Part shown: positions 11,337-34,336 of the stretch, piece after piece | How the letters are laid out: each line of letters starts with the position of its first letter | Position numbering within the stretch: position 1 is the first letter of the stretch | Assembly: GCF_001194135.2 (NCBI RefSeq) | Contig: NC_068987.1 | Location: 39,474,096-39,508,885, forward strand | DNA: 34,790 nucleotides | From: Octopus bimaculoides | Taxonomy: Eukaryota | Reading direction: 5' to 3' | The notes under the pieces: model-generated | Told to the model about the DNA's origin: nothing | Databases searched by the model: none | The model's input: only the letters and a program-made list of their open reading frames with translations | Translations under genes and position numbers: made by a program

Positions 11337-13270
11337 CAGATTCCATCAGACCCTGGAGACTATTTGTTATTCAGCTTATTCACAGCTAAATAGATGTCAT
11401 TTAGAGTTGGTTCAAATGCAATCTCTTCTATAACTGCAAGATGTTCAATTTTCTCTATCCTCCTCATGTCAGCAGATGATAGTCTATTGAAAAGTGCAGC
11501 GCTTATGAAAGGAAGCAGTGTCAGTCAGAAGCAAATGTTCATTTGCTGTTCTCTGAAGAAGATTTTGGGCCATCCATATACCTCCTTAACATAAGAGTAC
11601 AAACCCATGGCATCATTTCTATTAGCTACTTCTTGTGGCCCTTTTGCTTTACCATTCCTGTTTAATTTTCCTCAGAGCGGTCTGCACTTTCCTTTTCATC
11701 TTTCTGTAAGTTTCGTTTGAGTTGGGGTTCAAGGACTGAGAAAGAAGTGTATTGCCTAAGTTGTTTTTCTAAAAGTAGATCATGAATTTCTGCTGATCTA
11801 TCTGAGAACTAGTCACTGGACTTACGTGATCTAAATCCCACTGATGAACTTGCAGCCTGAAACACTTTTGTTTTGAAATCTTCCCATAGATTGTTCGGGT
11901 CAAGATTGAAATATTCTATAGCACCAAGGAATCTTTGAAAGTTGCTTGATAATTTAAAGTTTTCAACATTTAACTTTTTGGGTACCTTAGAACCAGACTG
12001 TTGATTTTTAGGCATTATCGAAAAATCTATTTTTCCACGCACTAGATGATGGTCAGTCCAGCTCTCTGCCCCTCTCATGGTCTGAATGCTAGAAACGTCT
12101 TTCATATGTTTTCTGATCAGAATGTAATCTATGAGATGCCAGTGCTTAGATCTTGGGTGCATCCAGGTGGTTTTATATTTATTTTTCTGCTTATTCTCAG
12201 TATAAAAAGCTACTCCATTTTTATTACATTTTCCAATCCCATGTCAACCAAAGGCCATGAAACATAGTCCTTTCCAACTCTTGCATTGAAATCTCCCAAT
12301 ATGACCAGCTTGTCAGATATTGGTACTTTCCTCAATAATTGTGCTAGATCATCATAAAATTGTCCTACAGTTTCATCAGAATGGGACACTGTTGGTGCAT
12401 AAATACTGACAACAGCAAGAAACCTACCTTTTGTCAGTTTAATACAGCATGACATGATCCGTTGATATACCACTTGGAAGCTCTGCAATGGTGGATACTA
12501 ATTTAGTATTCTTGAGAGTAAACCCAACACCAGATTCTCTACACTGACCCTTAGGTAGGCCTCTCCAAAAGATAGTATATCCATAAGTAGGTTCATTTAC
12601 TTGACCCTCACCAGAGAGATGAGTTTCAGAGAGCGCAACTACAAGGGAATATTTCTTAAGCTCACATGCAATAAGTGCAGTACGTCTTTCTGGTCTCTTG
12701 TTGAAATTATCATCAAAAGTGTGTGCACATTCCAACAGCCAAAATTCAGATGTTTATTTTTACTTTTTCTTGAAGATTGTTTGACTACAGTGGCAGGATG
12801 ACGATCGGACCCAGCCTGTGATACACTGGGACACCTGCCAGACCTGTTCCCTTGACATTCCCAAACCTTTTTAGCCATTTACTGAATCTGCTTGAGACAT
12901 TTTAGATTAAGTTACAAGTGCATTTTTAGGTTTCTGCCAACCAACCAACCAATTCAATGATTTCACTAAGATTTGGTATACAGGAAGTACCTGTACAGAT
13001 GAATAGTTTCCAGTGGGTGTAGCTTGCACTGCACTACCCTCACCTATTGGCCCAAGAAGACTTTCACCAGTGTGACATGAAAATTGATAAAACCAGGAAC
13101 TTCCAAGGCCTCAGGTTTTATTTCAGAGATTTCCTTCTCCTAGGTAGATTAACAACCAAGGTTAAAGAGCTTCTACTTGCCCATGAGGTAAGCTATCTTA
13201 TTCCAGACACCAAACTGACCCTCAAATACTCTATAAAGTGATATCACTTCAGTGACCTACGTGGAGTAGT
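11337..13270 (-). mobile_element. RTE (BovB-like) LINE, 5' UTR + APE endonuclease + linker, truncated just before RT
   Basis: NFGCWNVHTL...RPERRTALIACELKKYSLVVALSETHLSGEG; SIYAPT...LVILGDFNARVG; HPRSKHWHLIDYIL; ends at NK*SPGSDGI. Multiple frameshifts. Confidence 0.9.
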
Positions 13271-13330: not shown

Positions 13331-14498
13331 TTGGATCATTCTATAAATAAAGTGGTTTCTTTTTCAATTGTATGAACTAAAAGTCAGAGGGGGGACAGGA
13401 TAAACTACCTGCATCAACTTGCTATAAAAGCTGGTAGTAATTTTACCTTGAACTTATTCGTAGTGAAAGTTTTGAAGAGTGCAGTTCGATTTTAAGTTAT
13501 TTTTTCAAAGCTATAATGGAAGTGACAAAGGAGCATATTTTGCTTTATGTATTTAATAAAGACAACAACACAATGGAAAGTGTGGGGAATATTAATGCAG
13601 TATATGAAGATTGAACAATAAGCGTAACCCAGTATCAACTGTGGTTCTAGCAACTCTGAGTCGGAAACTACAGCCTAGAAGACGAGCCACATCCTGGAAG
13701 ACCTGTAGAGCTTGACAAAGATGTCCTGCAATCCTTGGTGGAACAAAATCCCATCGTGACTTGAGGAACTAGCAGAGAAGCTTGGATTTGGTTGTTCAAC
13801 CATTCAGCGACACCTGTGTGCCATCAGAAAAGTCAGTAAATTGGGTCAATGGGTTCCTCATAAACTTTCTGAGTCTAATTGTGCACAAGTAAATGTGTGC
13901 TTTTCTTTGCTGTCACGTCTCACAAATGAACCTTTTTTGGACCAAATAGCGACTGGTGACGAGAAATGGGTTCTCTCTAAAAATGTCAAATGCCAAAGAC
14001 AGTCAGTGGGAAAGGAGAAACACCAGCACCCCAAGCTAAAGAAGGTTTTCACCCACATCAGGTATTGTTATCTGTTTGCTGGGATATGAAAGGTTTAGTC
14101 CAGTTTGAACTTTTAAACCCAAACCTCACAATAACAAAGAAGATAAACAACCATCTTTGCTTTCAAAACAAAAGGTGTTCTTCCATCAGGATAATGCCCG
14201 CCCACACACAGCAAGGATGACATTTGAAAGGCTGGAGCAGTTTGAATGGAAAACGATGCCCCACCTACCATATTTGCTGGACATTGCCCTATCTGATTAT
14301 CATTTATTCTACATTCTTCAAAATCATTTGGATGGAAAAACTATAAATTCTGTACATGAGGTCAGAACGGTACTGGAGGAGTATTTTTCGTCATGGACAA
14401 GTGAATTTTGCAAGAGGGGCCTTGCAAGTCTAACAGATAGATGGAAGAGCATTGTAGAAAATGAAGGGGAGTATATTTTAGATTATAGAATGACCCAA
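13331..14498 (+). mobile_element. Full-length degenerate mariner transposon (D,D34D type)
   Basis: TIRs ttggatcattctataa / ttatagaatgacccaa, with TA on both sides. TGDEKW, HQDNARPH and ALSDYHLF motifs in broken frames. Confidence 0.95.
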
Positions 14499-15108
14499 TA
14501 TATATATATACATACTCGAAAGACAGAGAGAGGGTTTACTGTTTGACAGTGGCCTACAGCCATCCTTTCAGGTATAATCAATTATACTGGCCTCAGTATT
14601 ATATCAGAAAAGTGAAAAGGTTTGGATGGAATTTGAATTCACAGCATAAATACAAGAAAATATTTAATCCACTAATACTGACTGTGGCATCATAAATTAA
14701 GAATCTGGGCAAATAAAATGGACAATTATATAACCCTGAAATAAATAAATTCAGTAGTATACCATGATAAAAAAAATGAACAATGTTTTTGACCTCATAT
14801 TCATGGGTTTTTACCAAAGAAAATATTTATATTGCTAGATGTCCTTTTCATGATACATCTGCCACATCCACCTTTATGTTTCTCTGAATGGGTTCATGTT
14901 GATACAGACAATATGAATATGTTGTTTGTTTTACTACATCAAGCTACTTGTTAACATTAAATCAGCACAAATAGTTTTTATCTTTAGGTGAACTACTAAA
15001 TGCTGATACAAAAGTGATTGGACTCCAAATAGGGGTATTTTTATCAACTTATACTCCAAATTAAAAACTTGTACATATTTGTGTGCATGCATGCATATAT
15101 ATATATAC

Positions 15109-15147
<39 letters not shown>

Positions 15148-15205
15148 AAGGTACGAGCATTAAAGTATTTAATACACACTTGTAGCGATTTCATACATCT
15201 TTTTT

Positions 15206-15667
15206 TGAGCAAGATCGTTGCCGGTGCCCCTGGACTGGCTCATGTGCGGGCGACACATGAAATTTTTCGAGCGAGATCGTTGCCGGTACCCCTGGACTGG
15301 CTCTTGTGTGGGTGACACATGAAATGCACCACTTGAGCGGGACCGTTGCCAGTGCCACCTGGCTGGACTTTGTGGGATTTTCGAGCGAGATCGTTGCTAG
15401 TGCCCCTGGACAGGCTCTTGTGCGGGTGGCACATGAAATGCACCATTTTGAGCGTGGCCGTTGCCAGTGCCGCCTGACTGGCCTCCGTGCGGGTGACACG
15501 TAAAAGCACCCACTACACTCTCAGTGGTTGGCGTTAGGAAGGGCATCCAGCTGTAGAAACTCTGCCAAATCAGATTGGAGCCTGGTGTAGCCATCTGGTT
15601 TCACCAGTCCTCAGTCAAATCGTCCAACCCATGCTAGCATGGACAGCGGACGTCAAACGACGATGTT
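15206..15667 (+). mobile_element. RTE-related SINE-like element with five internal ~50-68-bp tandem units
   Basis: Repeated gagc(g)agatcgttgcc...ctggactggctc...cacatgaaat units, then the aagggcatccagc body and gat-type tail. Confidence 0.8.
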
Positions 15668-15672
15668 ACATA

Positions 15673-16839
15673 CAGGAGTTGGACAAAATAATGGAAACAC
15701 CAAGCATCATAATTTTGAAATATCTATAAAACAGTCAAAAGCTTGTTTATTTTTATGTTTTTAGATTTATTATTAGTGTTGTTTAATATGTCTTGCTAAA
15801 ATTGCTGTTTCTTTTCAGATACCATCAGAAAAAAGTAATTAAAATTCATTAAAATGATAGATTTATTGGACTTTCAAAGAGGTCAAATTGTTGGTGCTCG
15901 TACGGCAAGCACTAGCGTAATGAAAACAGCTGAAATGTTTGGTGTATCAAGAAGTACTGTCTCAAAAGTAATGACAGCCTTTGAGAAAGAGGGAAAAACC
16001 TCCTCGTCGAAACAGAACTCCAGAAGAAAGACAAAACTTTCAGATAGGGACTTTCGGACTCTTACTCAAATTGCTAGAAAAGATCACAAAAACTGTGCAC
16101 CAGGAGCTGCACAAAGCCGGATTTCATGGGAGGGCTGCAATCAGAAAACCACTAGTTTCAAAAACAAACATTGCAAAGCATTTAGAGTGGAATAAAGACC
16201 TACTGAATTGATCCCTAGAGCAGTGGAAGAATGTTATTTTCTCGGACAAGTCATCCTTTACCTTATTTCTGAATCCTTTACCTTATTTCTGACCACTGAC
16301 CCAGACTGCCTTCTTCCAAATGTTGAACATGGAGGAGAATCTGTGATGATCTGGGGGTCTATATCTTGGAAATCTGCCAGCCCAATGGTTTCCCTTCATG
16401 GTAGAATTAATAGTCAAGACTATTTAAGCATTTTATCTGATCAAATGGTTGCAGAACTGTTTCCAGAGGGAAACGCAGTCTTTCAGAATGATAATGCACC
16501 AATTCACACAGCTAAAGTTGTTACTGAATGACACGAGGAACATTCTAGTTGAACATCTTATCTGGCTACCACAGTCTCCAGATCTCAATATTATTGAACA
16601 TTTATGGTGCATTTTAGAAAAACAAGTAAGGAGTCGATATCCTCTACCATCACTACAAGAATTGGAGACTGTTTCAGCTGAAGAATGGATAAAAATTCTT
16701 TTGGAAACAATTCAAACTTTGTATGAGTCCATACCTTGTAGAATTCAGGCTGTAATTACTGCGAAAGGCAGTCCTACTCCATATTAAAATAAATTTGTTT
16801 GAAAATTTAAGGTGTTTCCATTATTTTGTTCAACCCCTG
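15673..16839 (+). mobile_element. Tc1-like transposon, degenerate
   Basis: 29-bp TIRs cagg(a/g)gttg(g/a)acaaaataatggaaacacc flanked by TA. DFQRGQIVGAR paired-like N-terminus; FSDKSS, FQNDNAPIH and SPDLNIIEHLW motifs; frameshifts. Confidence 0.95.
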
Positions 16840-18321
16840 TATATATAAATACACACACACAGAGTTGACATGAACAGGTGTCTCAATAATTAAATCTATG
16901 CAATGCTATCATACAGATATATGAATAGACAGCAGGCAAGTAGAGAAATACATCTACCTCCATTCTTTATTCCTATTTAGGCCTCACTACTAGTAATTTA
17001 GACACCTGTGCAAAACCACAGTAGAGATATACTCATTTATACACACACATACATTTTAAACTAAGTATGAAATGAAGTCTAAAAATAAAATCTCAATTTT
17101 TATTTATTTACTTTTTAGCATATATATATATCTGTTTTAGCCAATCAAGTGTAGAATCATAGCCTTATCAGGCATGGCTTTGTTATGCAAAACAATATCT
17201 GATTGATATGTGGCTTTATCATATCTCCAGATATCGACAGATGCAGCAGTTTGTCCATTTAGAGAGAAAATAAAATTCACTCATAGTTGTACAAAAAATA
17301 CTTTCTAAAAGTGGTGTTTGAAACTTCATAGTAACTGCATGACTAAGAAGCCAGTTGGTGTGATATCAGCTGCCAATTTGTTGTTTACAACAATGAAAAC
17401 TGCCTGAAAAAGAACTGGAACAAAAATAATTACACACACACAATATGTTGGAACCAGTAGAGATGATGAAGAGCTGAATTCAATAGATCCAGTTCTTGGT
17501 TCCAATATGGCTTGCTGTTGGATAAATTAAAGGAAAACAAATTAAAGAAGAAATAAATAGAACATTTAACTGAGATCAAATACAAAGACCTATTTATGTT
17601 GTATGTTTAATGTTGTTACATCAACGAGAAATTGCAAATAAAGGATCGAACTTGCTTCTTAACAAGTTAACTATAAAAATACATGGATGTATACAAATAT
17701 TTGTGGGAATGCATGTGTATGTATACAAGGACACTGAAAATGATGTCTCTACAAAGAGCTCACACTGAGAGCTCAACTTCTGGATTTTGGCAGTGAATTA
17801 ATTAAATGAGAAGTATGTCATTGGACAAAAAGACAGCCTACTGCAAGTAATGCATGAAGTGGCACATCTTCAAAAGTTGAATGAAGAAAGGCTTGCAGAA
17901 TGCACCCTAAATAGAAGTATCAACAATTAAACTACTATAAGTGATTCATTTAGTTCTAAGAGAGAAAGAGAGCTTTTCATTTTCCTAGCTCTTTTCCCAT
18001 TTAACAGCATACCATATATTCAGAGGTAACAAACAACTTGGTACTCTTCTTAAAGATATCAATGCACCAATTATTTTGTCCTAAAAAAACTGATGAAGAA
18101 AATAATAAAAATGATTTAATTACAGTGTTGTGATGATGAAGTCAAACAATGAGAAGAGAGGTTCTGAGAAAACATTCAATAAAGTCTAAAACATCACATT
18201 CAGAGGAGCATTTATATACAAACACACATACCTTCTTACAGAAATATATTTACATACCTATACTCTCTCACACACACACATACACATATACATACACACA
18301 CTCGTACAATACTTCAAACAA

Positions 18322-20697
18322 CTAATCACTCTCATCAGCATCTTCACATTCCATTTCTTCGTCTTCTTCCTCTTCCTCCTCTTCCTCTTCTTCTTCATCA
18401 TCATCCTCCTCTTCTTCTTCTTCTTCTTCTTCCTCCTCCTCCTCTTCTTCCTCCACTTCCTCATCATCTTCTACTTCAACTTCCTCCTCAACTTCCACCT
18501 CTTCTCCTGCATCTCCTTCTTCCTCCTCTTCATCTTCAACTTCTACTTTGACATCTTGGCTATCTTCATCATCCTCTACTTCAACAGTCTCTACTTCCTC
18601 CTCCTCCTCATCATCATCATCCTCCTCCTCCTCCTCTTCTTCTTCCTCCTCCTCCTCCTCCTCCTCTTCTTCATCCTCCTCCTCCTCCTCCTCTTCCTCT
18701 TCCTCACCAGATTTGGCAGAGTCTCCTTCCACAGTATGCTGTAGACGAAGAGGCGGAGTAGAAGGAACAGCTTGCTCTTCATCTTCATCTTCTTCTTCAC
18801 CAGCATCCACTTCTCCCTCTTCCTCTTCATCTTCCTCTTCTTCTTCCTCAATCTCTGCTGCAGCAGCTGCTTCAATGACCATTTGTTGTTGCTGTTGTTC
18901 CAACATCTGTCGCTCCAGTTCTTNNNNNNNNNNNNNNNNNNNNNNNNNNNNNNNNNNNNNNNNNNNNNNNNNNNNNNNNNNNNNNNNNNNNNNNNNNNNN
19001 NNNNNNNNNNNNNNNNNNNNNNNNNNNNNNNNNNNNNNNNNNNNNNNNNNNNNNNNNNNNNNNNNNNNNNNNNNNNNNNNNNNNNNNNNNNNNNNNNNNN
19101 NNNNNNNNNNNNNNNNNNNNNNNNNNNNNNNNNNNNNNNNNNNNNNNNNNNNNNNNNNNNNNNNNNNNNNNNNNNNNNNNNNNNNNNNNNNNNNNNNNNN
19201 NNNNNNNNNNNNNNNNNNNNNNNNNNNNNNNNNNNNNNNNNNNNNNNNNNNNNNNNNNNNNNNNNNNNNNNNNNNNNNNNNNNNNNNNNNNNNNNNNNNN
19301 NNNNNNNNNNNNNNNNNNNNNNNNNNNNNNNNNNNNNNNNNNNNNNNNNNNNNNNNNNNNNNNNNNNNNNNNNNNNNNNNNNNNNNNNNNNNNNNNNNNN
19401 NNNNNNNNNNNNNNNNNNNNNNNNNNNNNNNNNNNNNNNNNNNNNNNNNNNNNNNNNNNNNNNNNNNNNNNNNNNNNNNNNNNNNNNNNNNNNNNNNNNN
19501 NNNNNNNNNNNNNNNNNNNNCGTTCTAACTCTTGTTGGCGCTCCAGCTCTGCCTGTTGTCGTTCTAACTCTTGTTGGCGCTCTAGCTCTGCCTGTTGTCG
19601 TTCTAACTCTTGTTGGCGCTCCAGCTCTGCCTGTTGTCGTTCTAACTCTTGTTGGCGCTCTAGCTCTGCCTGTTGTCGTTCTAACTCTTGTTGGCGCTCT
19701 AGCTCTGCCTGTTGTCGTTCCAGCTCTTGTTGGTGCTCTCGCTCTGCCTGTTGTCGTTCCAGCTCTTGTTGTCGTTCCAGTTCTTTTTGGCGCTCCAACT
19801 CTGCCTGTTGTTCCAGTTCTTGTTGGCATTCTAGCTCTGCCTGTTGTTGTTCTAACTCTTGGCGCTTCAGCTCTGCCTGTTGTCGTTCTAACTCTTGGCG
19901 CTTCAGCTCTGCCTGTTGTCGTTCTAACTCTTGGCACTTTAGCTCTGCCTGTTGTTCCAGTTTCTGTTGGTGCTCTAGCTCTTCCTGTTGACGTTCCAGT
20001 TCTTGTTGGCGTTCAAACTCTGCCTGTTGTTTTTCTAACTCGTGTTGGCGCTTTAGCTCTGCTTGTCGTTCTAACTCTTGTTGGTGCTCTCGCTCTGCCT
20101 GTTGTTCTAATTTTTGTTGGCGCTCAAGCTCAGCCTGTTGTTGTTCCAGTGCTTGTTGGCGCTCCAACTCTGCCTGCTGTCGTTCTAATTTTTGCTGGCG
20201 TTCAATTTCCTTCTTCCTCTCTATCTCCTGGCGTTCAAATTCTTTCTGCCTCTCTAACTCTTTTTGTCTTTCTAATTCTTTCTGCCTCTCTATCTCTTTT
20301 TGTCGTTCTAATTCCTTCTGCTTCTCTACTTCTTTTTGTCTTTCTAAATCCCTCTGCCTCTCTATCTCCTTCTGACGTTCCTTTTGTCGTTCAACCTCTT
20401 TCTGTTTTTCAAGTTCCATCTGCTTATCAAGCTCCTTTTGTTTTTCAATTTCTTTCTTACGTTCAAACTCTTTTTTGCGTTCTTGTTCAAGGTCCTGTTT
20501 ACGTTGGGTCTTTTGCTGCTGCACTTGTTTGTCTTGATTTTCTTTCTTTCTTTTTGCTTCACTTTCCTGCCACCTATCATCATCTTGGTGCTCCCTTTTT
20601 CGGTTTTGCTCTTTCTGATGTATATCTTTCCGCAAAGTTTCTCGTGGCAAACTCTCCTTTCTGCTAACTTCTTCCTCTTCTGCATCCTCTTCTGACC
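18322..20697 (-). CDS. SNRPA1: Predicted terminal exon of the U2 snRNP A'-like gene: long E/K/R/Q repeat plus polyacidic extension
   Basis: Acceptor gtttctttgtAG|GG TCA GAA GAG is phase 1, matching the phase-1 donor at 25970. The frame is open for ~390 codons up to the gap. Left of the gap the same repeat continues (xELERQMLEQQQQQ) for ~200 codons to TAG at 18322-18324. The splice link to SNRPA1 is inferred. Confidence 0.7.
18924..19520. other. Assembly gap inside the coding tandem repeat
   Basis: 597 N. Both flanks are the ELERQ repeat, so the frame offset across the gap is not informative. Confidence 1.
19521..20440 (-). repeat. Coding minisatellite: 39-bp (QQAELERQQELER), 21-bp and 18-bp (QKELER) units
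   Basis: Near-perfect 39-bp units cgttctaactcttgttggcgctc(c/t)agctctgcctgttgt from 19521, becoming more diverged toward 20440. Confidence 0.95.
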
Positions 20698-20749
20698 CTA
20701 CAAAGAAACATATATATATTATAAATATATGCACACACACACACATTGA

Positions 20750-20900
20750 TTTTTATATAATGTTGAATGTACTGGTATGGTTATGTGATGCATATGATTA
20801 AGAAGAGCTGTATAACAAAAGCTGCTAAATGTGAATGAAACTTGTGGAAGAAGGAGACCCAGAAAGACATGGTATGAAATAGTGGAAGTTGATCTGACTA
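20750..20900 (+). mobile_element. RTE LINE 3'-end coding fragment
   Basis: Degenerate WYGYV...NETCGRRRPRKTWYEIVEVDL, matching the C-terminal GRGRPRKTW motif. Confidence 0.6.
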
Positions 20901-21539
20901 CAACAGTATTCAGTTGCTGCAATCATGAGCAAAATCTGCAAGAATTTCACCACTACTTTGTGCTACAGTTACATCCCTTCCTCTTTGGAACTACTTCCGT
21001 TTAAAATCCAACCATCATTTTCAATATCATACCTTTCCAATTTATTTTACTCCAATCATCCCTTCCTATGCCACAGTTATCTCTCCCTCTCCTGAGCCAA
21101 TCTTAGGACTGCCATACCTCATCCTTCCTGAACTATCACTTATCACTCCTCCTTCCTGATTTCCTCATTCCTATTTCTTTCTCTTCCCCTTATCTTACTG
21201 AAATTTTCCATTGACTACACATCCACTTTTGTTCCATGCATTCATCTCTACTCTCAACACTAACTCTGACACTCTCTTTTCATACTCTGTTCAATTTACC
21301 CACCCATCTTTCCCAATCCTGTTTGTATTTTCTCCTATTCTCACTTTGAGTATACAGACATCTTGTTGCCATCATCGTCTTCTTATTAGCTACTTATTTT
21401 TGCCCTTATATAATGTGAGATAGCCATATATCTCCTCTACAAGACACTTGTGCCTCTCCCTCAATCATACCCTCTAAACACCTGACATATAGCCATCTCC
21501 CTCTCTACTACAACCCCATTTAGTTGAGTTAGTTGGTGA

Positions 21540-21705
21540 CATTTATTCATAATGGTGTAAGGAAAAAAAACCACCCAGCACACTTTATAAAGTGGTTTAA
21601 GGAAGGACACCCAGCCATAGAAACTGGCTTGTTGGATCATCCTGTTGAACCATCCAAACAATGCCAGCATGGGAGACAGACGTCACATAGTGATAATGAT
21701 GATGC
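21540..21705 (+). mobile_element. Old RTE-related SINE 3' remnant
   Basis: aaggacacccagccatagaaact...ccatccaaacaatgccagcatgg...gatgatg resembles the 10700-10936 tail. Confidence 0.55.
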
Positions 21706-21948
21706 ACTTGGAGATATAATTATACACATACACACACGTAACATGAAATCCTAAAATATATATCATATGAAGCTTGTATTCTAATTTTCTGTTGGTTGTC
21801 AGATTAGGCCACAAATTGTAATTGCATCAACCTTAGTATTTAAATGCAAACTGGACACTAGAGTGAGGGAGATACATCAGTCTGACATGAACACAATCAA
21901 GTGTTTTTGTTCGAATGTAGTTTTTAGCCCCACAGTAATATAAACATA

Positions 21949-22951
21949 TAGGGTGTTAGGGCTAAATTTGACAATTGTTGTCTCCTTTTTTCAAGAACAG
22001 CTTGATATATGGTAAACAAACAGCTAACAACATTGGAGAACATAAAAATTAAAGTTGCATTTGAGAAAAAGATAGCTGGCACAAAGAGTTGGGAGCCATC
22101 TGAATATTGGAAAAAAGTTACCTCATTATGATGATTCATATTGGGTATCAAAAATGCTGACACCATGACTGCTGCTCAAAGCTCCATGAACAATGTAAAG
22201 ATTGTAAGACTATGAAGCTATGACCAGCAGGAGTTCCAACTGTGTTTGCAGGCCAGGATTCATCCAACAACTATGGGACTAGGTGATGGAAGATCCAGGC
22301 TTTAGCGAGAGAGATGGGTCTTGTAATAGCTACCATGAAACTGGCCCTGAATGAGGACCTTCGCAATCACTCATACAAAAAGTGCAAGGGACACATTCTG
22401 TCAGTTAGGGCCAAGGAGAACCACTTGATGAAGGCAAAGAAGATCCTGAACAAACTGAGGTAGCCTATTGAGCTGGGAATGATCTGATTCTTCTCAGATG
22501 AAAAGAAATTCTGTCAGGACCAGTTGCACAACACTGAGAACAACCAGTGACTTACCTACAACCCATGTTAGAAGTGATTGTCAGAGAATTTCTATGATTT
22601 TGCCAGTCCCAATTTCTGGCCTCCTAATTCCTTTGATTGTAATCCCATGGATATGTAGGTTGCAGTTGAGAAAGATACAAACCGCATTATCCGCAACATT
22701 AGTGCCAAGCTGGTGGCCAAGCTCAAGAATGGGTTTGAAGATCTTTCCAGGAACATATTGGCGAATGCATGTACCAAGTTCCAGAGCCATCTTGAAACTG
22801 TGGTGGAAACTGAGGGCAGCTAATTTGAGTAAACTGTTATCTCCCAGTCATAATCTAGTTGATATGTTACTATTTTTAAAAATACTTTTATTTTTGGAGG
22901 GAATATTGTGTTTTCCTTTTATGAAAACTCAAATTTAGCCTGTAAATCCTG
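21949..22951 (+). mobile_element. Internally deleted IS630-Tc1-mariner element, maT (DD37D)-like
   Basis: Degenerate TIRs sharing ggctaaatttga / tcaaatttagcc, with TA flanks. FFSDEKKFCQDQLHN and FWPPNSFDCNPMD motifs; the middle of the catalytic domain is missing. Confidence 0.75.
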
Positions 22952-23117
22952 TAAGATAGCACCATTATCATGGGCTGAACAACAAATCTCTAGCACTCTT
23001 GCTGCTTAGTGCTGCTTTTGTAATCTTAGTTTAGCAACTTTATCAACTTACACTACCTGATTATGGAAGGCATCATAATAAAATGTATCCAGTACCCTCT
23101 GTAAAGCAGCTGATGGA

Positions 23118-23330
23118 TCATCAACATCATTCAACATCCACTCTCCATGCTGGCATGAGTAGGACAGTTTAACAGAGAATCTGCAAGTTGCAGGGCTGCG
23201 TTGAGCTCCAAAGTCATCTTTGGATGCTTTCTAAGATAGATGCTCTTCCTACAGAGGGTACTGGGTGCTTTTTTATGCCATGAAACTTGCAACACAGAAA
23301 AGAACAGGGAAAAAGAAGAAAGGAAAAAAA
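23118..23330 (-). mobile_element. Old RTE-related SINE remnant
   Basis: catcattcaacatccactctccatgctggcatgagtaggacagtttaac is the reverse complement of the (gat)n tail family. Confidence 0.55.
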
Positions 23331-23349
23331 ATTCTCACTACTAAGCTTT

Positions 23350-24930
23350 ATTCTTCTCTAATCTTTCATGTCATCAGTATTCTGAGCCCACACCACACTA
23401 CCATGTAGCATAGCTGTAATGTACACAAGCATCATACAATCTGCCTTCCTCTTGAAAAGGGAGAAACTTTTCATTGCTAATAAAGCTAACGGCTCTCTGA
23501 ACTTTCTCCATCCTATTCTTATTCTAATGACTACATTTTCAGAACATCCTCCCCCATAGCTAATTAGGTCACCTAGCTAACAGAAACTTTCTATCTAGGG
23601 AACCTCCAAAGCATTCGAGAAAATCAATTTCCCATGTGACCTCAAACTGTATGGTACGTGTGCATCTTCCACAAAAACAGTTTTCTCTTGCAACCTTTCA
23701 GTAATTCCTCAGCACATCTTGTGTGCCCATAGCTTGCACTGGGTATACCATGTGGAATTACTGTCTATACCTTTCCTACATATCAAGTAGAGCCATTTAT
23801 CTGAGGTGGGTAGGGTCCTGCCTGTTTTCTTGCTTACTAGATCTTTAAGACAATGATTCAAGGTTTTGCTTTTACACCTGCAATTTCTTTTTTACAATGA
23901 GAGTAAGATCATCAGTATATAGCAGTTCCTAGGGACAGCAGGTCTTGAATTTGACTGTAATGGCCTTGGAAGACAATGATGAATAGGATGGGACTGAGAA
24001 CTGAGTCCTGGTGAATGCCTACCTGTACATTAAATTCATCACTGTACTCCTGGTTAACTATCACTTTACTGACAGCAGTCCTGTATGTAAATTGCACAAC
24101 TTTCACAAGTCATCCATCTATACCTAGCTTCCTCAGAGATCACCATTTCAAAGAGCAAGACACTCTGCCAAAGGCTTTCTCCAGGTCAACAAATGTCAAG
24201 TATAATACTTCTGCAGTTGTCTAAGATATCATCAGTAGTACTTCTACTCAACACAAAATCAAACTGCATCTATATTTCTAATTAATTAGGCTATAACTCT
24301 CTCTGTAACTTTAATTTGGTATCTCTATTACTTCTAAGGCATCTTCTTTACCCTTGTAGCAGCTGACTATAAAACAGCTACACCAGTCATTGGGAATGAC
24401 ACTTTCCTGAATTACCTGATTAACTATACAAACGACCAGATTGTATCCTACTCCATCAAATATTTTAAGTATCTCAGCAGTAATTCCCAATGGATCATTA
24501 ATTAGTTTTTTTTTGTTTTTTTTTTCATATCTTTAACTGCTCTGCCTATCATACTACTGTCAATTCTGATGGCTGGCCCATATTAGGAGGATTCTCCTTC
24601 TCCCCACATTTAGCAACCTTTCATAGTGACACTTCCATGCCGCTTTCTTCTTAGAATCAGTAAGTGCAAGCAAACCATTATCTGTATGTACAAAGTTCTC
24701 AACCACAACATCTAGATTCTCTCTAATACACTGTCTAGTATCCCAGAATACCACTTCTCTCTGATTTGCATGCTAGTCATGTCTATGACACCCTGAACAA
24801 GGCTGGCAACAGGAGGGAGATCTAGCAATATAAACTGCTCCAAAAAGTAACATATGAGCGAGAAATGATTCTCTAATCTGGATAGGAAACTCAGACAGTG
24901 ATGACCTATCTGACATATGCAAGCATGGAA
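23350..24930 (-). mobile_element. Degenerate RTE-clade LINE, RT region
   Basis: ALTDSKKKAAWKCHYERLLNV; FVDLEKAF-like; EFNVQVGIHQDSVLSPILFIIV. Many stops. Confidence 0.85.
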
Positions 24931-24974
24931 AGTGGGCATAAAATGATGATGACATTATATGTGCATATGTGTCA

Positions 24975-25215
24975 CCATCACCATTTTAATGATCACTTTT
25001 CCAGATGGCTCAGATGGAATTTACTGAGGTAGATTTTTAATGGCTGGAATTTACTGAGGTAGATTTTTGATGTTGCTATCTCTCACTTGTTTCCAAGCAA
25101 GGTAATATTTCCTCAGGGCCAGAAATGTTTTCATGGAAGATTGAAAATGAATGACGATGATTGTATTATATAGACACTAGTTTTACAACCACCATGTAAT
25201 GTCAAGATTAGAAGA
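24975..25215 (-). mobile_element. SINE 3' half (family of 26437), with an internal ~24-bp tandem duplication
   Basis: Reverse complement ggaaatattaccttgcttggaaac...aaaaatctacctcagtaaattccatctga aligns to 26698-26828. Confidence 0.7.
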
Positions 25216-25577
25216 CGCAAAAATTGGTAGATCAAGAATGTTACTATATTTTTATCCTTTTGAGAGCCAAAATTACTGACTTTGTCATTCATTTAACCAG
25301 GGTCAATAATGTCAGTCAATGTCAACGATATTATTTAACAAATCAGCTGATTCTATTAACTACATCACCTTCCCTCCAAAAAATGGTCTCTGTATGTTGA
25401 GAAAAGTAGTGAATTATGCAAAGCAACACATTATTCAGCTTTCTTGACAAAAGTGAATCAAAGAAAAGACAGCATGAAATAGAGTTATATATTTAGTGTC
25501 ACAGGTGAAAGAATACAGTGTGCACAAAAAATACAGCAGTCCATACCAACTTATCTTCATAGAAGAATAAACCATAA

Positions 25578-25781
25578 CCCTTTAGCATTTAAACCAGTCA
25601 TATCCTGCCTGAATATTCTAAAACCAGCCAGATCTGGCCTCTTGCACCTACTCTACAATGTTATTCTAAAAATAAACAATCACATCTTCAAAGTCTGGAA
25701 GCTACAAGATAAGCCATGACTAATTCAAAACAATGTGAATAAATAAGCATTACATCTGACAGTAATTTCAATGCTAAAGGG
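25578..25781. mobile_element. piggyBac-type MITE (~204 bp)
   Basis: TIRs ccctttagcatt / aatgctaaaggg; ATAA on the left and TTAA on the right (TTAA target site duplication with one mutation); no ORF. Confidence 0.8.
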
Positions 25782-25969
25782 TTAAAATAAAACTGAAGTT
25801 TAAGTAGGTAGTGCACTATTAAGAACCTTATCAGTGAAGTAAATGTACATAGTATTTGATTGGCAATTAGTTTTGTTCTTTCTTCAGAATTGAGTGATCA
25901 GAAATTTTCTTAACATAGAAAAATAAACATACATAATAAAAAAGTAAAGAAAAAAAAAATTATCCTCAC

Positions 25970-26063
25970 TTCCTTTAATTTCAAAGCCAGGAATGTTTCC
26001 AGACCGTAGCATCTGGTTCAAGTGCTCCACTTCCTGCAAAGTCTTTGCCATTGATATTGCTTT
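25970..26063 (-). CDS. SNRPA1: U2 snRNP A'-like internal exon (94 nt, phase 0 to 1): KAISMAKTLQEVEHLNQMLRSGNIPGFEIKG
   Basis: Acceptor ttttgatctacAG, donor A|GTGAGG. The peptide matches the conserved U2A' C-terminal helix (human, from memory: NAIANASTLAEVERLKGLLQSGQIPGRE). Confidence 0.9.
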
Positions 26064-26436
26064 CTGTAGATCAAAAGAAAATTTGAAAATTAATACTAAA
26101 GATATGAGCAAATAAATACATATTGAGGCACCTGAAAAAAAAATTGACAAAAATATATTTTTCAAATCAATTATCAGAAATTATTATATTGCAGTTGCCA
26201 TGAGTTCAGATTTAAATATTGCTATTTGCTATGCCTCAGGACAAAACAGGGGATTCTTTTTTTTTTTTCATAGTTGAATAATTGGTGTTGAGGAACATGA
26301 TGGAATACAAACAGAAAACAAACAAAAAGAAATAGATAAAAGGAAATGAAATTAAAACTTTGAGTATAAAAAAAAATAATAACCACTATATTAATAATAT
26401 AAAGCTTCCTTAAATCATCTTAAATTGTCTTTAAAA

Positions 26437-26828
26437 GTGGCTGCACAGTTAAGAAGTTTGCTTCCCAACCACATGGTCTTGGGTTCAAACCTATTGGGCA
26501 ACACTTTGGGCAAGTGTCTTTTACTGTAGTCTCAGACTGACCAAAGCTTTGTGAATAGATCTGGTAAATGGAATGTAAAAGGCAGTCATGTGTTGTGTGT
26601 GTGTGTGTACATGCATTTGCGGGTACCCTTGTCTTGAGGTCATGTGATTGTTGGAAACAAGTAAGGTTGTTTATTCCCAGTCTTCTATGCTGTCACAGGG
26701 AAATATTACCTTGCATGGAAACAGATGAGAGTTGGTAACAGGAAGGGCATTTGATTGTAAAAAATCTGCCTCAACAAATTCCATCTGATCCATGCAAGTA
26801 TAGAAAAGTGGATGCTAAATGATGATGA
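26437..26828 (+). mobile_element. tRNA-derived SINE with RTE-like (gat)n tail
   Basis: Head like the 1152 SINE (gcttcccaaccacatgg...gggttcaaacc...gggcaagtgtc), but the tail is aggaagggcat...gatgatga. Confidence 0.8.
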
Positions 26829-27289
26829 ACATGCTTAATTGTTCAGTGATTAAAAATAATGTCTACAATATTTAATAATCTATTGATAATAGCTAAAATA
26901 TTGCAATACCAAACCAAAGTAACCAAGAAGGAAATAAAGTAACTTAATGAAGGAAAAAGTAAAATAGTGTTGGTTGCTTAGTTGAAAACGAAGTCATGAG
27001 AAAGAAATAACGCCTTTCCCAGTCATACAACATTGAGTTGTGTCTAAAATTTATTGTTTTGTACATAATTATACCACTGTTTTCTTGATGAGAGAAATTT
27101 AAAATATACCTTACAAGAATTTTAACAAAAAAAAAAACTTTTTCTCTTCCATGCATCACAGAATTAATATGACAAGACTTGTCAACTATCAGTGTTTTCG
27201 TAATCAATTTGAAAATCCATTGCATGGGTGATTAGCCCATTCAACTTCACCTGTTTCAGTTTTACCTGTTTCTATCTCTCACGACGAGG

Positions 27290-27555
27290 ACGATTAGGGA
27301 GCAAATATTTAAGAAAAAGTGGAAGTGGATTGATAGCACAATTAGAAAAGACACATCAAATGTAGCGAAAAGTGCTTTACAGTGGAATCCAGATGGATAT
27401 AGAAAGAGGGGTAGGCCTAAGAACTTGTGGTGTAGATCAACGCAAAAGGAACTAGAGAAAGGGGGACATTCATGGCAGAGTATAAGTACAGAAGCAAAAA
27501 ATTATGCGACATGGAATTCAATTATAAGTGGCCTATACTCCGTGTTGGAGGGTTA
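27290..27555 (+). mobile_element. 3' end of a second RTE-like LINE family
   Basis: KKKWKWIDSTIRK...ALQWNPDGYRKRGRPKNLWCRSTQKEL is a typical RT C-terminal motif. Confidence 0.7.
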
Positions 27556-28330
27556 AAGGCAAGAAAGAAAGAAAATACATCACAGAAAAATAATAAAAGC
27601 AAGATGATAAAATATTATTACTTAAAAGACTTGACTACTGCAGAGCTTTATGTCAGAAATATACATAGGATCTTTAGCTTTCCATAGCTGAATCCACTTA
27701 GCTATAAATAGGTACTATGAGGAGACATTGTCACTACTGCTTGTAATAAGTGAAAATATTGTATATTTAGCATTTTGTAAATTTGCAGTAGTTACTTCAA
27801 ATACTCTTTTGACATTAGGAAGATTGATGACAATGAAACAACTCCAGAAAATTCAGCTTCAGAGATTATGAAATCAGTAATCAGCAGTTTAATCTCAGCT
27901 TCATATCATCTAAATCATATAAAGCAGTTGAAAGCAGCAACAAAAAATTAATAAAGAAACAAAAACAATAAAATAAGAGTACTATCATTTCACATATACT
28001 TAGTCTACAAGATCAGTGTTTAACTCTTTATTTTGGTATAAAGGATAAGAAACCAGTTGTCTGTAGAAGGACACAAATTCAGTAAAGAAAACCAACAAAT
28101 CACTTGTCAGGTGTACAGCTGCAGTGCTGTGACTTGTTTCAATGAATGAGAGCACCACGTTGTACCTACACTGTACATCTGGACCCAATAGCTGTGGTAC
28201 CTACAGAGTAAATGGAGCCAACAGCTGTTTTGCATGTTAATAGAATATGAACCATTAACATTAGAATAAGAATTAGTGACCTGAAGTACAAGAAACCACA
28301 TTCATTGTCTAACATAATCAACAAGAGTAC

Positions 28331-28513
28331 CTTAATGGCTTCAATTTCTTCTTTTGAAGATCCAGCAGGTAGACTTGAACCCGCCATGGATGCAGCTGTT
28401 GATAGTTTAGCACCAGGAACAAATGTCTTTGGTTTTTTAACAGCACCAATGCCATTTGTAGTGGAAGCCTGAGGTTTTTTACACTTGTAAAGCTTTTCTG
28501 ATTTTAGACGATC
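28331..28513 (-). CDS. SNRPA1: U2 snRNP A'-like exon (183 nt, phase 0 to 0): DRLKSEKLYKCK...KPKTFVPGAKL...SKEEIEAIK
   Basis: Acceptor ttttttttcAG|GAT, donor AAG|GTACTC, open 61 codons. KTFVPGA and EEIEAIK match U2A' (human, from memory: SKTFNPGA...DVEAIK), and it joins the 94-nt exon in frame. Confidence 0.9.
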
Positions 28514-28579
28514 CTGAAAAAAAATAAATTGGACACTTTTTCATTTCATTCTTTTTGTTATATATATATATATATATAT

Positions 28580-29181
28580 NNNNNNNNNNNNNNNNNNNNN
28601 NNNNNNNNNNNNNNNNNNNNNNNNNNNNNNNNNNNNNNNNNNNNNNNNNNNNNNNNNNNNNNNNNNNNNNNNNNNNNNNNNNNNNNNNNNNNNNNNNNNN
28701 NNNNNNNNNNNNNNNNNNNNNNNNNNNNNNNNNNNNNNNNNNNNNNNNNNNNNNNNNNNNNNNNNNNNNNNNNNNNNNNNNNNNNNNNNNNNNNNNNNNN
28801 NNNNNNNNNNNNNNNNNNNNNNNNNNNNNNNNNNNNNNNNNNNNNNNNNNNNNNNNNNNNNNNNNNNNNNNNNNNNNNNNNNNNNNNNNNNNNNNNNNNN
28901 NNNNNNNNNNNNNNNNNNNNNNNNNNNNNNNNNNNNNNNNNNNNNNNNNNNNNNNNNNNNNNNNNNNNNNNNNNNNNNNNNNNNNNNNNNNNNNNNNNNN
29001 NNNNNNNNNNNNNNNNNNNNNNNNNNNNNNNNNNNNNNNNNNNNNNNNNNNNNNNNNNNNNNNNNNNNNNNNNNNNNNNNNNNNNNNNNNNNNNNNNNNN
29101 NNNNNNNNNNNNNNNNNNNNNNNNNNNNNNNNNNNNNNNNNNNNNNNNNNNNNNNNNNNNNNNNNNNNNNNNNNNNNNNNN
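28580..29181. other. Assembly gap (could hide an upstream SNRPA1 exon)
   Basis: N run. No LRR-coding exons were recognised elsewhere in the window. Confidence 1.
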
Positions 29182-30677: not shown

Positions 30678-30823
30678 NNNNNNNNNNTGTGGCTGACCCC
30701 TAAGGGTGGATGTTACTGTTGCTTTTAGCCCCAGGAGAACATCTCCTCCAGCTGGCTTAGCGACACATATCTGTGTCCTGTCTATTTTTGCCAAGGGAAG
30801 TTATCCCTCCCATCTTGATCTGC

Positions 30824-30896: not shown

Positions 30897-32325
30897 AACA
30901 TAATTATTTGTATCTAAAGCGTCACCTTTACCTTTGTAGCAGTTGACCATGGTGATGCTACACCAGTCATTGGGTATGACTCCTTCATGTATCACCTGGT
31001 TAACTATATGGGTGACTAGGCTATAGCCAACACTTCCAGATACTTTAAGCATTTCTGCAGTGATTCCTGATGAGGCNNNNNNNNNNNNNNNNNNGGGGGG
31101 GGGGCTTTCCCTGTCTTCATACCCTTGACTGCTTTAGCTGCCATGGTACTGTCAATTCAGATATCTGGTCCCTCTGCTAGGTCGACATTTGGCAGACTCT
31201 CTTTCTCCCATTCATTCTCTTTATTGAGCAACCTTTCATAGTGGCGTCTCCAAACCTCTCTCTTTGCAGCCTCGTTTAGTGCAAGTGAACTATCATCCAT
31301 GCGGACACATTTCTCTGCTACGACATCACGATTCTCTCTCCCACACTGTCTTGCAACACGAAATACTTCAAGTCTTTGGTCCTCACGGCACAGAACATAG
31401 GCAAATTTTTTCTTCTCTGCTTCCCCTCTGGCTAAGTAAACCTGTCTCCTAGCTTCCCTGTTGGCAGTCACATACAATTCCCTGCTACCTCTATTCTTCC
31501 AGTCCTTCCAAGCCTGTTTCTTTTGTCTAATAACCCTGTTAACCACATTGTTCCACCACCACGCTACCTTGGGTCAAGAGGGAACTTTGCACCATCCACA
31601 GATCTGGTCAGTGACTCTCAGCAGGTTGTCCTGTAGCAACCTCCAGTTGTCTTCTACATTATGTGATGCTATATCCCCTTCTATTTCATTGAAGGCTTCG
31701 AGTAATATGTCTCTAAATCTCTGTCCATTTGCAGGATCCTTAAGTTTCCACACCCTTCTCCTCCAAGCTGCTCGTCTTCTTCTGGGCATCCATTTAGCCC
31801 TGATCCCGAAGTCGCTAACTACTAATCTATGTTGAGGGGTACATTCTTCGCCTGGGAAGGTTTTGGCATTTATAAGCAGCCCTCTTTCCCTTTTTCTAGT
31901 GAGGATGTAGTCAATTTGGCTAGTGTGTCTGCCAAAACGGTAGGTGACTAGGTGACAGGCGGGTTTCCTGAAGTTGGTACTGCAAATCCTAAGATCATTT
32001 GCATCACAGAACTCCAGCAGTCTGGTTCCCTCAATGCGGGAACCAAAACTATAGCCTCCAAGTACACCATGGAAGCCCCCTGCATGTTGTCCAATATGTC
32101 CATTGAAATTACTAGCCACAAAGAGAAGGTCCCTGTCATTCGTCAACAAGGTAGTCTGCAATAGGGTATCATAAATCGGTCTTTCTGCCGATCCGGTAGC
32201 CCCGGTTGAGGGGCATAGGCCGAGATAATGGTAGCCAACATATGGTGAAGCACTAATCTAATCTTAAGAACTCTGTCACATACTCTGACCACCTCAATTA
32301 CCTTATCAACCCATTTCTCCGCAAG
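30897..32325 (-). mobile_element. RTE-clade LINE fragment (EN C-half, linker, start of RT), truncated at both ends
   Basis: ISAYAPQ, NFNGHIG, SQIDYIL, PQHRLVVSDF, VWRRHYERLLN, KGKGDALDTNNY. Contains a small gap at 31077-31093. Confidence 0.92.
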
Positions 32326-34336
32326 TCAGATCTAGGCAAATTAAGTAAGATAATTTTAGATAAATACATCAATAGATTTAATGATATTAATTACGTTACA
32401 TTATCGAATAGTACTATTGATACTTTAAAATGGTTTAATAATATTAAAGATAAAAATAGATACAAATTTATTCAAATAGATATTGATAATTATTATTCTT
32501 CTATTAATGAGATTGTACTTAATAAGGCCCTAATTTATGCCATGAAGAGGGTAGGTATGACTTATGATGAAGTCAATGTAGTTAAAATGGCTAGGAAATC
32601 GTTGATTAAATATAATAAGATGTGGGCTAGGAAAGATACTAGGGACTATTTTGATATACCAATGGGAGCACCCGATTCAGCACAGGTAACTGATTTAGTA
32701 GGTATATATTTATTATCAGAACTTCAACTTGAAAACTTAAAATTGAAGGGTGGTTTATATAGGGATGACTTTTTATTACTAAGAATTTCACCAACACTAG
32801 AATTATATAAGAAGATAATATATAGTCTTTTTAAAAGAAATGGATTAAAGATTACTATTTATAATGAGAACTATAATATATATTATTTAGATGCTAATTT
32901 TAACTTATCTACAAGTAATACCCAGTGGAGGCGCAATGGCCCAGTGGTTAGGGCAGCGGACTCGTGGTCATAGGATCGCGGCTTCGATTCCCAGACCGGG
33001 TGTTGAGAGTGTTTATTGAGCGAAACATCTAAAGCTCCACGAGGCTCCGGCAGGAGATGTACTCTTTCACCACAACTTTCTCTCACTCTTTCTTCCTGTT
33101 TCTGTTGTACCTGTAATTCAAAGGGCCAGCCTTGTCACACTGTGTCACGCTAAATATCTCCGAGAACTACGTTAAGGGTACACATGTCTGTGGAGTGCTC
33201 AGCCACTTGCACATTAATTTCACGAACAGGCTGTTCTGTTGATCGGATCAACTGGAACCCTTGACGTCGTAAGCGACGGAGTGCCAACAACAACAACAAC
33301 AGGTAATACCCAACCTTACCATAAGATTAATGAAAATATTAAATGCATTCATGCGAAAAGTAATCACCCACCCTCAATTAAAAAAAATCATTAACATTTA
33401 CTATAGGTAAGAGAATATCATTACTTTCATCTAATTTAGAGATCTTTGAAAAACATGCACCTTATTACAATAAAGCCCTTCGCAAGGCGGGATATACTAA
33501 TGATATTCAATTTTTTAATAATCCGAAGTATAATTATAATTTTATTAGTAATGATTATAATAGTAATGATTTATTTAATAAACATAACCTTTATATTTAT
33601 GATAATGTCTACTTAAGTATTTATGATAAGAATAATAGGTATTATGATAAATTACATAAACATAATAGTAATGGAGACAATAATAGATTTAAATTTAATT
33701 TTTTTAATGATAATAATAAATTTAATATAAATAATAAATACAATAATACCTATAATAAGAACAAACTTTGGCTAATCATTCCATACGGCGCTCAAGTTAA
33801 AACTAACATTAATAAAGAAACTTTGAAAGTTATTGATATATTCCTAAGTATTATAAATATAAATTAAATACTTATTCTAATAATAATAATAATAATGTGG
33901 ACCAGGATATAATTAATTATACATGTATAGATAAGACTAAATGTAAATTTAATAATAAATGCAATTTGAAGGATGGATGTCTTGTATAAATGCATAGTGA
34001 CTTTAATGGACGGGAATAAACATAATGGTTATAATTTATATAAGATTTATATAGGATTGACTTCTAATAAAATTAAATTACGAGTGGCTCAACATATGCA
34101 CTCATTTAAGAATAGAAATCTGATTAATTCTATAGGCCTAAGTAAATTGGGAACTTAAATCTAAAAATATTAACTACATTTTACAATGGGAGATAGTTTG
34201 TAAGGCGAAATCCTATCGTATAGGTAATGAATTTAAGGAGATATTATTTAAAAATTATAATATTTTGATTAATTCTTTTGATGAACGAAAAATTAAGTGT
34301 AGACATAAATTACTTTATTTATATAAGTTTAGCTAA
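32326..34336 (+). mobile_element. 5'-truncated Penelope-like retroelement (RT + C-terminal GIY-YIG), probably Naiad-type
   Basis: IDIDNYYSSI, MGAPDSAQVTDLVG, GLYRDD, YYLDANFNL, SNHPPSI, Cys-rich linker CIDKTKCKFNNKC, VLYKC...IYIGLT...KLRVAQH, C-terminal KCRHK*. Several frameshifts and a SINE insertion. Confidence 0.9.
32925..33298 (+). mobile_element. tRNA-derived SINE inserted in the Penelope-like RT, with (caa)n tail and 14-bp target site duplication
   Basis: A box tggcccagtgg, B box gcttcgattcc. Target site duplication aca(a/g)gtaataccca at 32911-32924 and 33299-33312. Confidence 0.9.

Follow-up and report, generated by a model that had tools for sequence, protein, structure and literature searches.

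The window, a stretch of 34,790 nucleotides (nt) of the Octopus bimaculoides genome (contig NC_068987.1, positions 39,474,096 to 39,508,885), carries the 3′ part of the gene for U2A′ (SNRPA1), a protein of the U2 small nuclear ribonucleoprotein (snRNP), followed by a very long open reading frame (ORF) that occupies the place of the last exon of this gene. U2A′ has its counterparts in SNRPA1 of human, Lea1 of yeast and mog-2 of C. elegans. All parts of the gene lie on the reverse strand; positions are those of the window unless a locus is named, and a slash within nucleotide letters marks a splice site. Only two U2A′ exons are inside the window, the exons for the leucine-rich repeats (LRR) being outside it. 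The upstream one, at 28513-28331 (183 nt, phase 0 at both ends), is bordered by the acceptor ttttttcag/GAT and the donor AAG/gtactc and encodes residues 154 to 214 (DRLKSEKLYK...KTFVPGAKL...SKEEIEAIK). The penultimate exon of the gene, at 26063-25970 (94 nt), has the acceptor tctacag/AAA and the donor GGA A/gtgagg. It encodes residues 215 to 245 (KAISMAKTLQEVEHLNQMLRSGNIPGFEIKG) plus one base and ends in phase 1, as proposed in an earlier reading of the bare sequence, hereafter the original prediction.

That these two exons, with canonical splice sites, encode the C-terminal signature of U2A′ was also borne out. They correspond with 100% identity to residues 154 to 245 of P0001, the UniRef model of O. 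bimaculoides U2A′, and both match residues 155 to 245 of human U2A′ in solved spliceosome structures (E=4e-10). The signature KTFxPG ... EAIK.AI..A.TL.EVE.L..L...G.IPG is present, with 16 invariant columns in an alignment of eight species. Model P0001, which holds both exons, carries the LRR domains PF14580/PF12799 of Pfam, LRR_9 among them. The LRR part is 60 to 68% identical to characterized U2A′ orthologues, and the LRR exons could be mapped in the loci of Octopus vulgaris, Octopus sinensis and a cuttlefish. As the exact N-terminal product has been recorded from one place in O. vulgaris and from one in O. sinensis, the locus is, judged from sequence, the ordinary U2A′ gene of O. bimaculoides and not obviously an extra paralogue, one of the possibilities in the original prediction. 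From the identity of its LRR part, the octopus protein would be expected to bind U2B″ and stem-loop IV of U2 small nuclear RNA (snRNA).

Downstream of the penultimate exon, a last intron of 5272 nt (25969-20698) separates it from the long ORF. The ORF opens right after a strong phase-1 acceptor, gtttctttgtag/GG TCA GAA GAG GAT, at 20697. Across the predicted 25970/20697 junction, A plus GG forms an Arg codon, followed by SEEDAEEEEVSRKE. The first part of the exon (20697-20450; R-SEEDAEEEEVSRKESLPRE...) has an acidic start and continues as a nonrepeated stretch rich in Lys, Glu, Gln and Arg. The frame stays open for 391 codons after the junction Arg (392 in all), down to 19521, where an assembly gap begins. 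After the gap it is found again from 18921 (ELERQMLEQQQQQMVIEAAAAAEIEEEE...ECEDADESD) and extends over 199 codons to a TAG stop at 18324-18322. Both the phase-1 acceptor and the predicted open lengths of about 390 and 200 codons thus hold. With the gap included the last exon measures 2376 bp, i.e., some 2.4 kb or more. The three frames contain 29, 19 and 0 stops before the gap and 4, 29 and 1 after it, the single one being the terminal stop. Shuffling the DNA 1000 times with its composition preserved gave a longest ORF of 236 codons for the first piece (391 observed) and of 147 codons for the second (199 observed); the open frame exceeds the expectation from composition and is no chance effect. 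A scan of the last intron for another acidic phase-1 exon revealed none in octopus or in cuttlefish, in line with the long exon being the last one. An Rfam scan of positions 17000 to 29000 gave no match.

Beyond its nonrepeated start, the exon consists of coding repeats. Repeats of 18, 36 and 72 nt at 20473-20207 encode (K/R)QKE(L/I/V)E hexapeptides with balanced charge. They are followed at 20200-19521 by an array of 39-nt units coding for the 13-residue sequence QQAELERQQELER, which is Gln-rich and net negative and enters the gap after 17.5 copies. The octopus repeat periods of 18, 36 and 39 nt are all multiples of three, and the codons of the ELERQ motif vary, with five kinds used for Leu and five for Arg. 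The 13-residue units, too few and in part too alike to serve as a test for selection, show no bias: they differ from one another by 19 synonymous versus 41 nonsynonymous changes, with equal numbers of differences at each codon position. Such in-frame repeats with varied codons have the look of a translated, slippage-prone coding region. The gap itself, 597 N of nominal length (18924-19520), sits within the repeat array, since both of its edges encode ELERQ repeats: ...RQQELE(R) before it and (K)ELERQ after it, in the frame of the acidic tail.

The 3′ part of the exon comprises the end of the repeats and a conserved hinge, ELERQMLEQQQQQMVIEAAAAAEIEE (18923-18850), then a polyacidic tail (18849-18322) that ends ...DEEMECEDADESD at the TAG stop. 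Glu makes up 54% and Asp 13% of the piece encoded after the gap, which has a net charge of -129 over 199 residues. A candidate polyadenylation signal, ATTAAA, is located at 18120-18115, 201 nt past the stop; it is a sequence match only, as is an AATAAA 237 nt past the stop of the corresponding cuttlefish exon.

We found the same layout and intron phase in the cuttlefish Acanthosepion pharaonis, whose genomic locus (L001) was reached through its SNRPA1 protein, P0002. The orthologous exon (KAIARAKTLQEVERLNQMLRSGQIPGFDAIKQAK) ends in phase 1 with AAA A/gtaagt after L001 position 29002, and a 1981-nt intron leads to the acceptor ttttacag/GG ATT AAT AAT GAA GAA GTT GAA... at 30984. The long ORF that starts there has an acidic beginning, then 24/48-nt repeats coding for R(K/Q)RQEELE, then ...ELERQLQEQQQQLMIEAAAAAEIEEDEEEE..., an IEAAAAAEIEE hinge as in octopus and a tail of approximately 170 residues rich in Asp and Glu (...IEAAAAAEIEED...EEEEMEVEDSD), with its end at 33150. 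As this locus is ungapped and its array passes straight into the hinge and the tail, it supports the continuity of array and tail in octopus. The model P0002 already splices into the long ORF at the same acceptor, for the first 34 codons.

Local alignment of the octopus protein encoded after the gap with the cuttlefish product gave a score of 568. At the DNA level, a collinear match of 601 nt (window 18923-18341, L001 32567-33140; 72% identity, E=1e-89) runs almost to the stop codon, whereas the last introns show no similarity. The repeat units differ by lineage, 18/36/39 nt in octopus and 24/48 nt in cuttlefish, and their amino acid character is the same. Some 35 units of the cuttlefish array measure 24, 48, 57 or 72 nt, save for two frameshifted ones. 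The two long ORFs share no start codon that would permit an independent gene. As the long exon is common to an octopus and a decapodiform, and so to two cephalopod orders, it is at least coleoid-wide by this sequence comparison. The extension is absent from other molluscs; the lineage-specific innovation considered in the original prediction would not be restricted to octopus. Within the hinge, 23 nt (ATTGAAGCAGCTGCTGCAGCAGA; window 18876-18854, L001 32611-32633) are identical in octopus and cuttlefish, including five third positions of Ala codons. This stretch holds the palindrome CAGCTG, and its identity might point to constraint on the RNA or the DNA beside that on the protein.

The ancestral form of the last exon can be read from other animals. 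The best 120 U2A′ homologues are 236 to 352 amino acids (aa) long. The proteins of scallop, oyster, chiton, abalone, Lingula and human (255 aa) terminate 16 to 22 residues beyond the IPG helix in an acidic tail (for example, RGDAVEEEEEEMEVTNGT), which agrees with the premise that a U2A′ of about 250 aa normally stops some 20 residues after this helix. In the scallop and chiton genes that we mapped (loci L004 and L005), a phase-1 intron is found at the same residue position as in octopus and cuttlefish (donors CGA G/gtagga and AAA G/gtatgc, respectively), and the last exon has 16 to 22 codons (about 50 to 70 coding nt) that encode the acidic tail only. In a multiple alignment, the start of the cuttlefish long exon, EEVEEEMDI, corresponds to the ancestral tail, EVEDEEEMDT in chiton and VEEEEEEMEV in scallop. 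No relative of the extension was found beside SNRPA1 in scallop and chiton. As the long ORF matches the ancestral last exon in location, phase and initial motif, we infer that it is this exon enlarged rather than a neighboring gene. We consider it likely that the long exon is translated as part of U2A′, adding a charged rod and a polyacidic tail to it. The cuttlefish architecture, the ancestral phase-1 exon and the acceptor used by P0002 support the original prediction in its main claim, a U2A′ of roughly 1000 aa with such a rod and tail.

The predicted octopus protein would contain 245 U2A′ residues, the junction Arg, 391 residues, the part encoded in the gap and 199 residues, that is, 836 residues plus the gap, or approximately 1000 aa; the predicted cuttlefish product has approximately 976 aa. 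A peptide such as SEEDAEEEEVSR would be expected from the long-tailed protein. The 391-residue piece consists of 28% Glu, 24% Gln, 12% Arg, 11% Leu and 10% Lys. AlphaFold2, run without an alignment, predicted helices at residues 18 to 243 and 257 to 390 of this piece, with a mean predicted local distance difference test score of 82. Hydrophobic residues recur every 6 or 6.5 positions, show no periodicity of 3.5 residues and are scattered around the helix (resultant 0.04 to 0.10). In the absence of a heptad signal we rejected a coiled-coil rod; a charged single helix or an extended polyampholyte is more likely than a canonical coiled coil.

Public annotation offers a different picture. The four public cephalopod models are 246, 157, 157 and 303 aa long and lack the extension save for its first 34 codons in P0002. 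From the genomic sequences, all four appear truncated or mis-spliced. The 157-aa proteins (P0025), RefSeq XP_029639546.1 of O. sinensis and CAI9726212.1 of O. vulgaris, read into an intron after the fifth exon, where K is followed by VSST and a stop. The next intron is longer than 10 kb in both species, and the C-terminal exons lie more than 10 kb further on (loci L003, from CM016865.1, and L002, from OX597820.1, respectively; models at 10001-39096). In the 303-aa cuttlefish P0002, a 91-nt GT-AG “intron” (L001 31084-31174) is removed inside the long ORF, which shifts the frame into a stop, as if a gene predictor had imposed the usual size on U2A′. The name given to the O. vulgaris record is “small nuclear ribonucleoprotein A trichohyalin-like” although its 157-aa product is pure LRR. 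This name hints that some annotation may have joined both parts. In the literature on SNRPA1/U2A′ in cephalopods or on “trichohyalin-like” in octopus, we found nothing relevant on the extension.

Several observations weigh against translation of the whole exon as part of U2A′. The 246-aa model P0001 ends ...FEIKGK, through another terminal exon. No protein that spans the junction or bears the extension was found in a set of 5.8 billion sequences, save for the first 34 codons in P0002. A search with the extension yielded weak low-complexity matches only, among the matches listed, and the tail had 0 matches in an exhaustive HMMER search, probably because of the composition filter; these database results neither support nor contradict the extension. 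At the nominal 597 N, the gap puts the two halves of the exon one base out of frame, and the upstream frame carried across it reads ...RTGATDVG...NGH and stops. As the gap length is only an estimate, this offset neither supports nor refutes continuity. Two frameshifts interrupt the cuttlefish array, a unit of 46 rather than 48 nt at L001 31922-31967 and one of 25 rather than 24 nt at about 32328-32352; if real, they would make the protein stop at 32014. They are likely to be consensus errors or very recent changes, because the frames downstream still encode the repeats and the conserved hinge and tail. Finally, the first 45 residues of the exon are alike in octopus and cuttlefish only in composition, as 105 of 500 shuffles reached the score of their alignment, and for the start of the exon we rely instead on position, phase and the short acidic motif.

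The ending of P0001 raises the possibility of two alternative last exons, the main product being a 246-aa U2A′ and the long exon a minor or tissue-specific 3′ end. A pattern scan for the terminal exon of this model gave tttatttttag/AA TAA at 25665 as the best-fitting acceptor, 304 nt past the donor, and it is most likely the source of the Lys and stop at the end of P0001. However, this acceptor supplies two coding bases and a stop, and it lies within an insertion of approximately 210 bp (25575-25784) that resembles a miniature inverted-repeat transposable element and whose inverted termini are 19 nt long (TAACCCTTTAGCATTTAAA; 95% complementary). At 6953-6967, the 15-nt terminus of this element recurs with one mismatch. 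Such an exon would lack the acidic tail, a feature of nearly every U2A′ relative that we read, it has no counterpart in cuttlefish, and it looks like the solution of a gene predictor. The hinge, tail and stop kept in both octopus and cuttlefish argue for translation of the long exon at a level relevant to selection. A predominantly short U2A′ seems to us quite unlikely. We find it highly improbable that U2A′ ends elsewhere and that the long ORF belongs to a separate “trichohyalin-like” gene downstream of it on the same strand. U2A′ and the entire ORF are united in no annotated protein, an in-frame ATG occurs at 20746, 16 codons upstream of the acceptor, and the name of the O. vulgaris record could reflect two neighboring genes. 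Yet this ATG sits in a (TG)n/(TA)n microsatellite, and the cuttlefish has none upstream of its acceptor; the first internal Met is codon 10 there and roughly codon 108 in octopus. Each of the two ORFs starts right at a strong acceptor, in the phase needed by the upstream exon and at the place of the ancestral exon with its acidic motif; moreover, a separate gene would leave U2A′ without any acidic-tail exon.

An untranslated ORF, i.e., a purine-rich minisatellite in the 3′ untranslated region or in downstream DNA that remained open by accident, would profit from a biased composition that lowers the frequency of stops (45% A, 28% G and 9% T before the gap), and could account for the lack of homologues in the exhaustive HMMER search. 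It is hardly credible given that the other frames carry stops on both sides of the gap, that no shuffle reached the observed lengths, that conservation with cuttlefish covers the hinge, the entire tail and the position of the stop but not the introns, and that repeat units different in each lineage are still multiples of 3 nt in all but two cases and keep the same amino acid character. Even if translated, the expansion may be largely neutral and merely tolerated; the retention of hinge, tail and stop position in both octopus and cuttlefish speaks against pure neutrality.

Under the favored explanation, translation of the long exon as part of U2A′, the ancestral last exon would have been enlarged approximately 40-fold in coleoids, from about 20 to 700 or 800 codons, as purine-rich repeats within the coding sequence underwent slippage and duplication in frame. 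The predicted mRNA would encode the normal parts for binding of U2B″ and stem-loop IV (the LRR and the C-terminal helix), the ancestral acidic motif, a Glu/Arg/Lys/Gln-rich helix of approximately 400 to 600 residues, perhaps 55 to 90 nm long if fully helical, and finally the conserved Ala-rich hinge with an Asp/Glu tail of approximately 170 residues. In spliceosome structures, the C terminus of U2A′ is at the flexible periphery of the U2 snRNP. Because of this peripheral location, the appendage could be tolerated and the core role of U2A′ kept. The rod might hold a strongly anionic, ANP32-like tail tens of nanometers away from the snRNP, where it could bind histones or proteins rich in Arg/Ser or basic residues, or alter partitioning into nuclear bodies, by analogy with ANP32. 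Roles as a condensate scaffold or a chromatin tether, put forward in the original prediction, are speculative.

U2A′ is among the most length-conserved spliceosomal proteins, and a conserved extension of some 750 residues would alter the U2 snRNP periphery in an unusual way. It would provide, too, a clear case of a coding minisatellite growing in frame within the terminal exon of an essential gene, and proteomic or transcriptomic studies that rely on public models would miss or mis-assign the product. In its strongest form, the proposal is that coleoids have permanently fused a helical spacer of 55 to 90 nm and a polyacidic module of approximately 170 residues to a core U2 snRNP protein. We regard this as rather unlikely. 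If true, every U2 snRNP of these animals would carry an arm that binds histones or basic proteins and that could couple splicing to chromatin or alter partitioning into nuclear bodies. This would amount to a rewiring of the spliceosome periphery particular to one lineage, whose members are already noted for unusual RNA processing.

Other features of the window include remnants of mobile elements. Broken Tc1/mariner transposase ORFs lie on the forward strand at 13841-16787; the ORF at 14157-14546 matches the catalytic domain of the Mos1 mariner transposase (E=1e-18), and another set, at 15854-16787, was classed as Tc1-like from its translation only. Candidate fragments of endonuclease/reverse transcriptase from retrotransposons without long terminal repeats (...SIYAPT...LGDFNARVG...) are located on the reverse strand at 11809-12735 and 31157-32161, again from translation only; the ORF at 31574-32161 had no match in the PDB. 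Further assembly gaps are present at 8795-9728, 28580-29181, 30678-30687 and 31077-31094, several of them beside (TA)n or (TG)n microsatellites, and the one at 28580-29181 begins 67 nt upstream of the first U2A′ exon of the window. In both O. vulgaris and O. sinensis, an 888-aa ORF contained in one exon (L002 and L003, 6992-9658, reverse strand) with a match to the Pfam family SCP-1 (synaptonemal complex protein 1) is arranged head to head with U2A′, approximately 340 bp upstream of its start codon. This ORF may be an intronless copy. We rejected it as a relative of the extension, as their 19% identity is compositional only.

Compared with canonical U2A′, exemplified by human SNRPA1, the octopus protein has homologous C-terminal exons, the last intron at the position and in the phase found in molluscs, and an acidic motif after the IPG helix. 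It is set apart by the predicted addition of about 600 to 800 residues as rod, hinge and polyacidic tail, beyond the 352 aa of the longest of the best 120 homologues. An N-terminal LRR domain of the U2A′/phosphoprotein-32 type followed by a long Asp/Glu tail is reminiscent of ANP32 (pp32), whose low-complexity acidic region the predicted octopus tail resembles, and the Pfam name on P0001 is “U2A′/phosphoprotein 32 family A C-terminal domain.” Unlike the octopus protein, ANP32 has no helical spacer of several hundred residues between LRR and tail. We rejected membership in the ANP32 family, because all the top matches of the LRR part are U2A′; the likeness is architectural only, and the acidic tail of octopus U2A′ is independent in origin from that of ANP32.

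The rod shares with ER/K single alpha-helices a content of approximately 30% Glu plus Asp, with Gln at 15 to 30%, a long predicted helix and the lack of a hydrophobic face. Lys plus Arg amount to 29 to 34% up to residue 172 and to 15% in the 13-residue array. In contrast to ER/K helices, i/i+4 pairs of opposite charge are rare in the extension (0.04 to 0.07 per residue), and the 13-residue part is Gln-rich and net negative; i/i+3 pairs are dense, at 0.55 per residue, only at residues 80 to 172, the hexapeptide part. With trichohyalin-like Glu/Arg/Gln-rich repeat proteins the similarity is compositional only, and trichohyalin itself was rejected as there is no S100 EF-hand domain and the N terminus of the gene is the U2A′ LRR. 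Within the U2A′ family itself, in teleosts (278 to 327 aa) and caenogastropods (P0102 of Pomacea, 289 aa), the same acidic tail has been moderately lengthened by Asp/Glu-rich low-complexity sequence, although these gains are of tens of residues, with neither a helical array nor a conserved hinge. They indicate that the terminus of U2A′ tolerates changes in length. Judged from the sequences, the two lengthenings are apparently independent, and the cephalopod case would be the extreme of a recurrent tendency.

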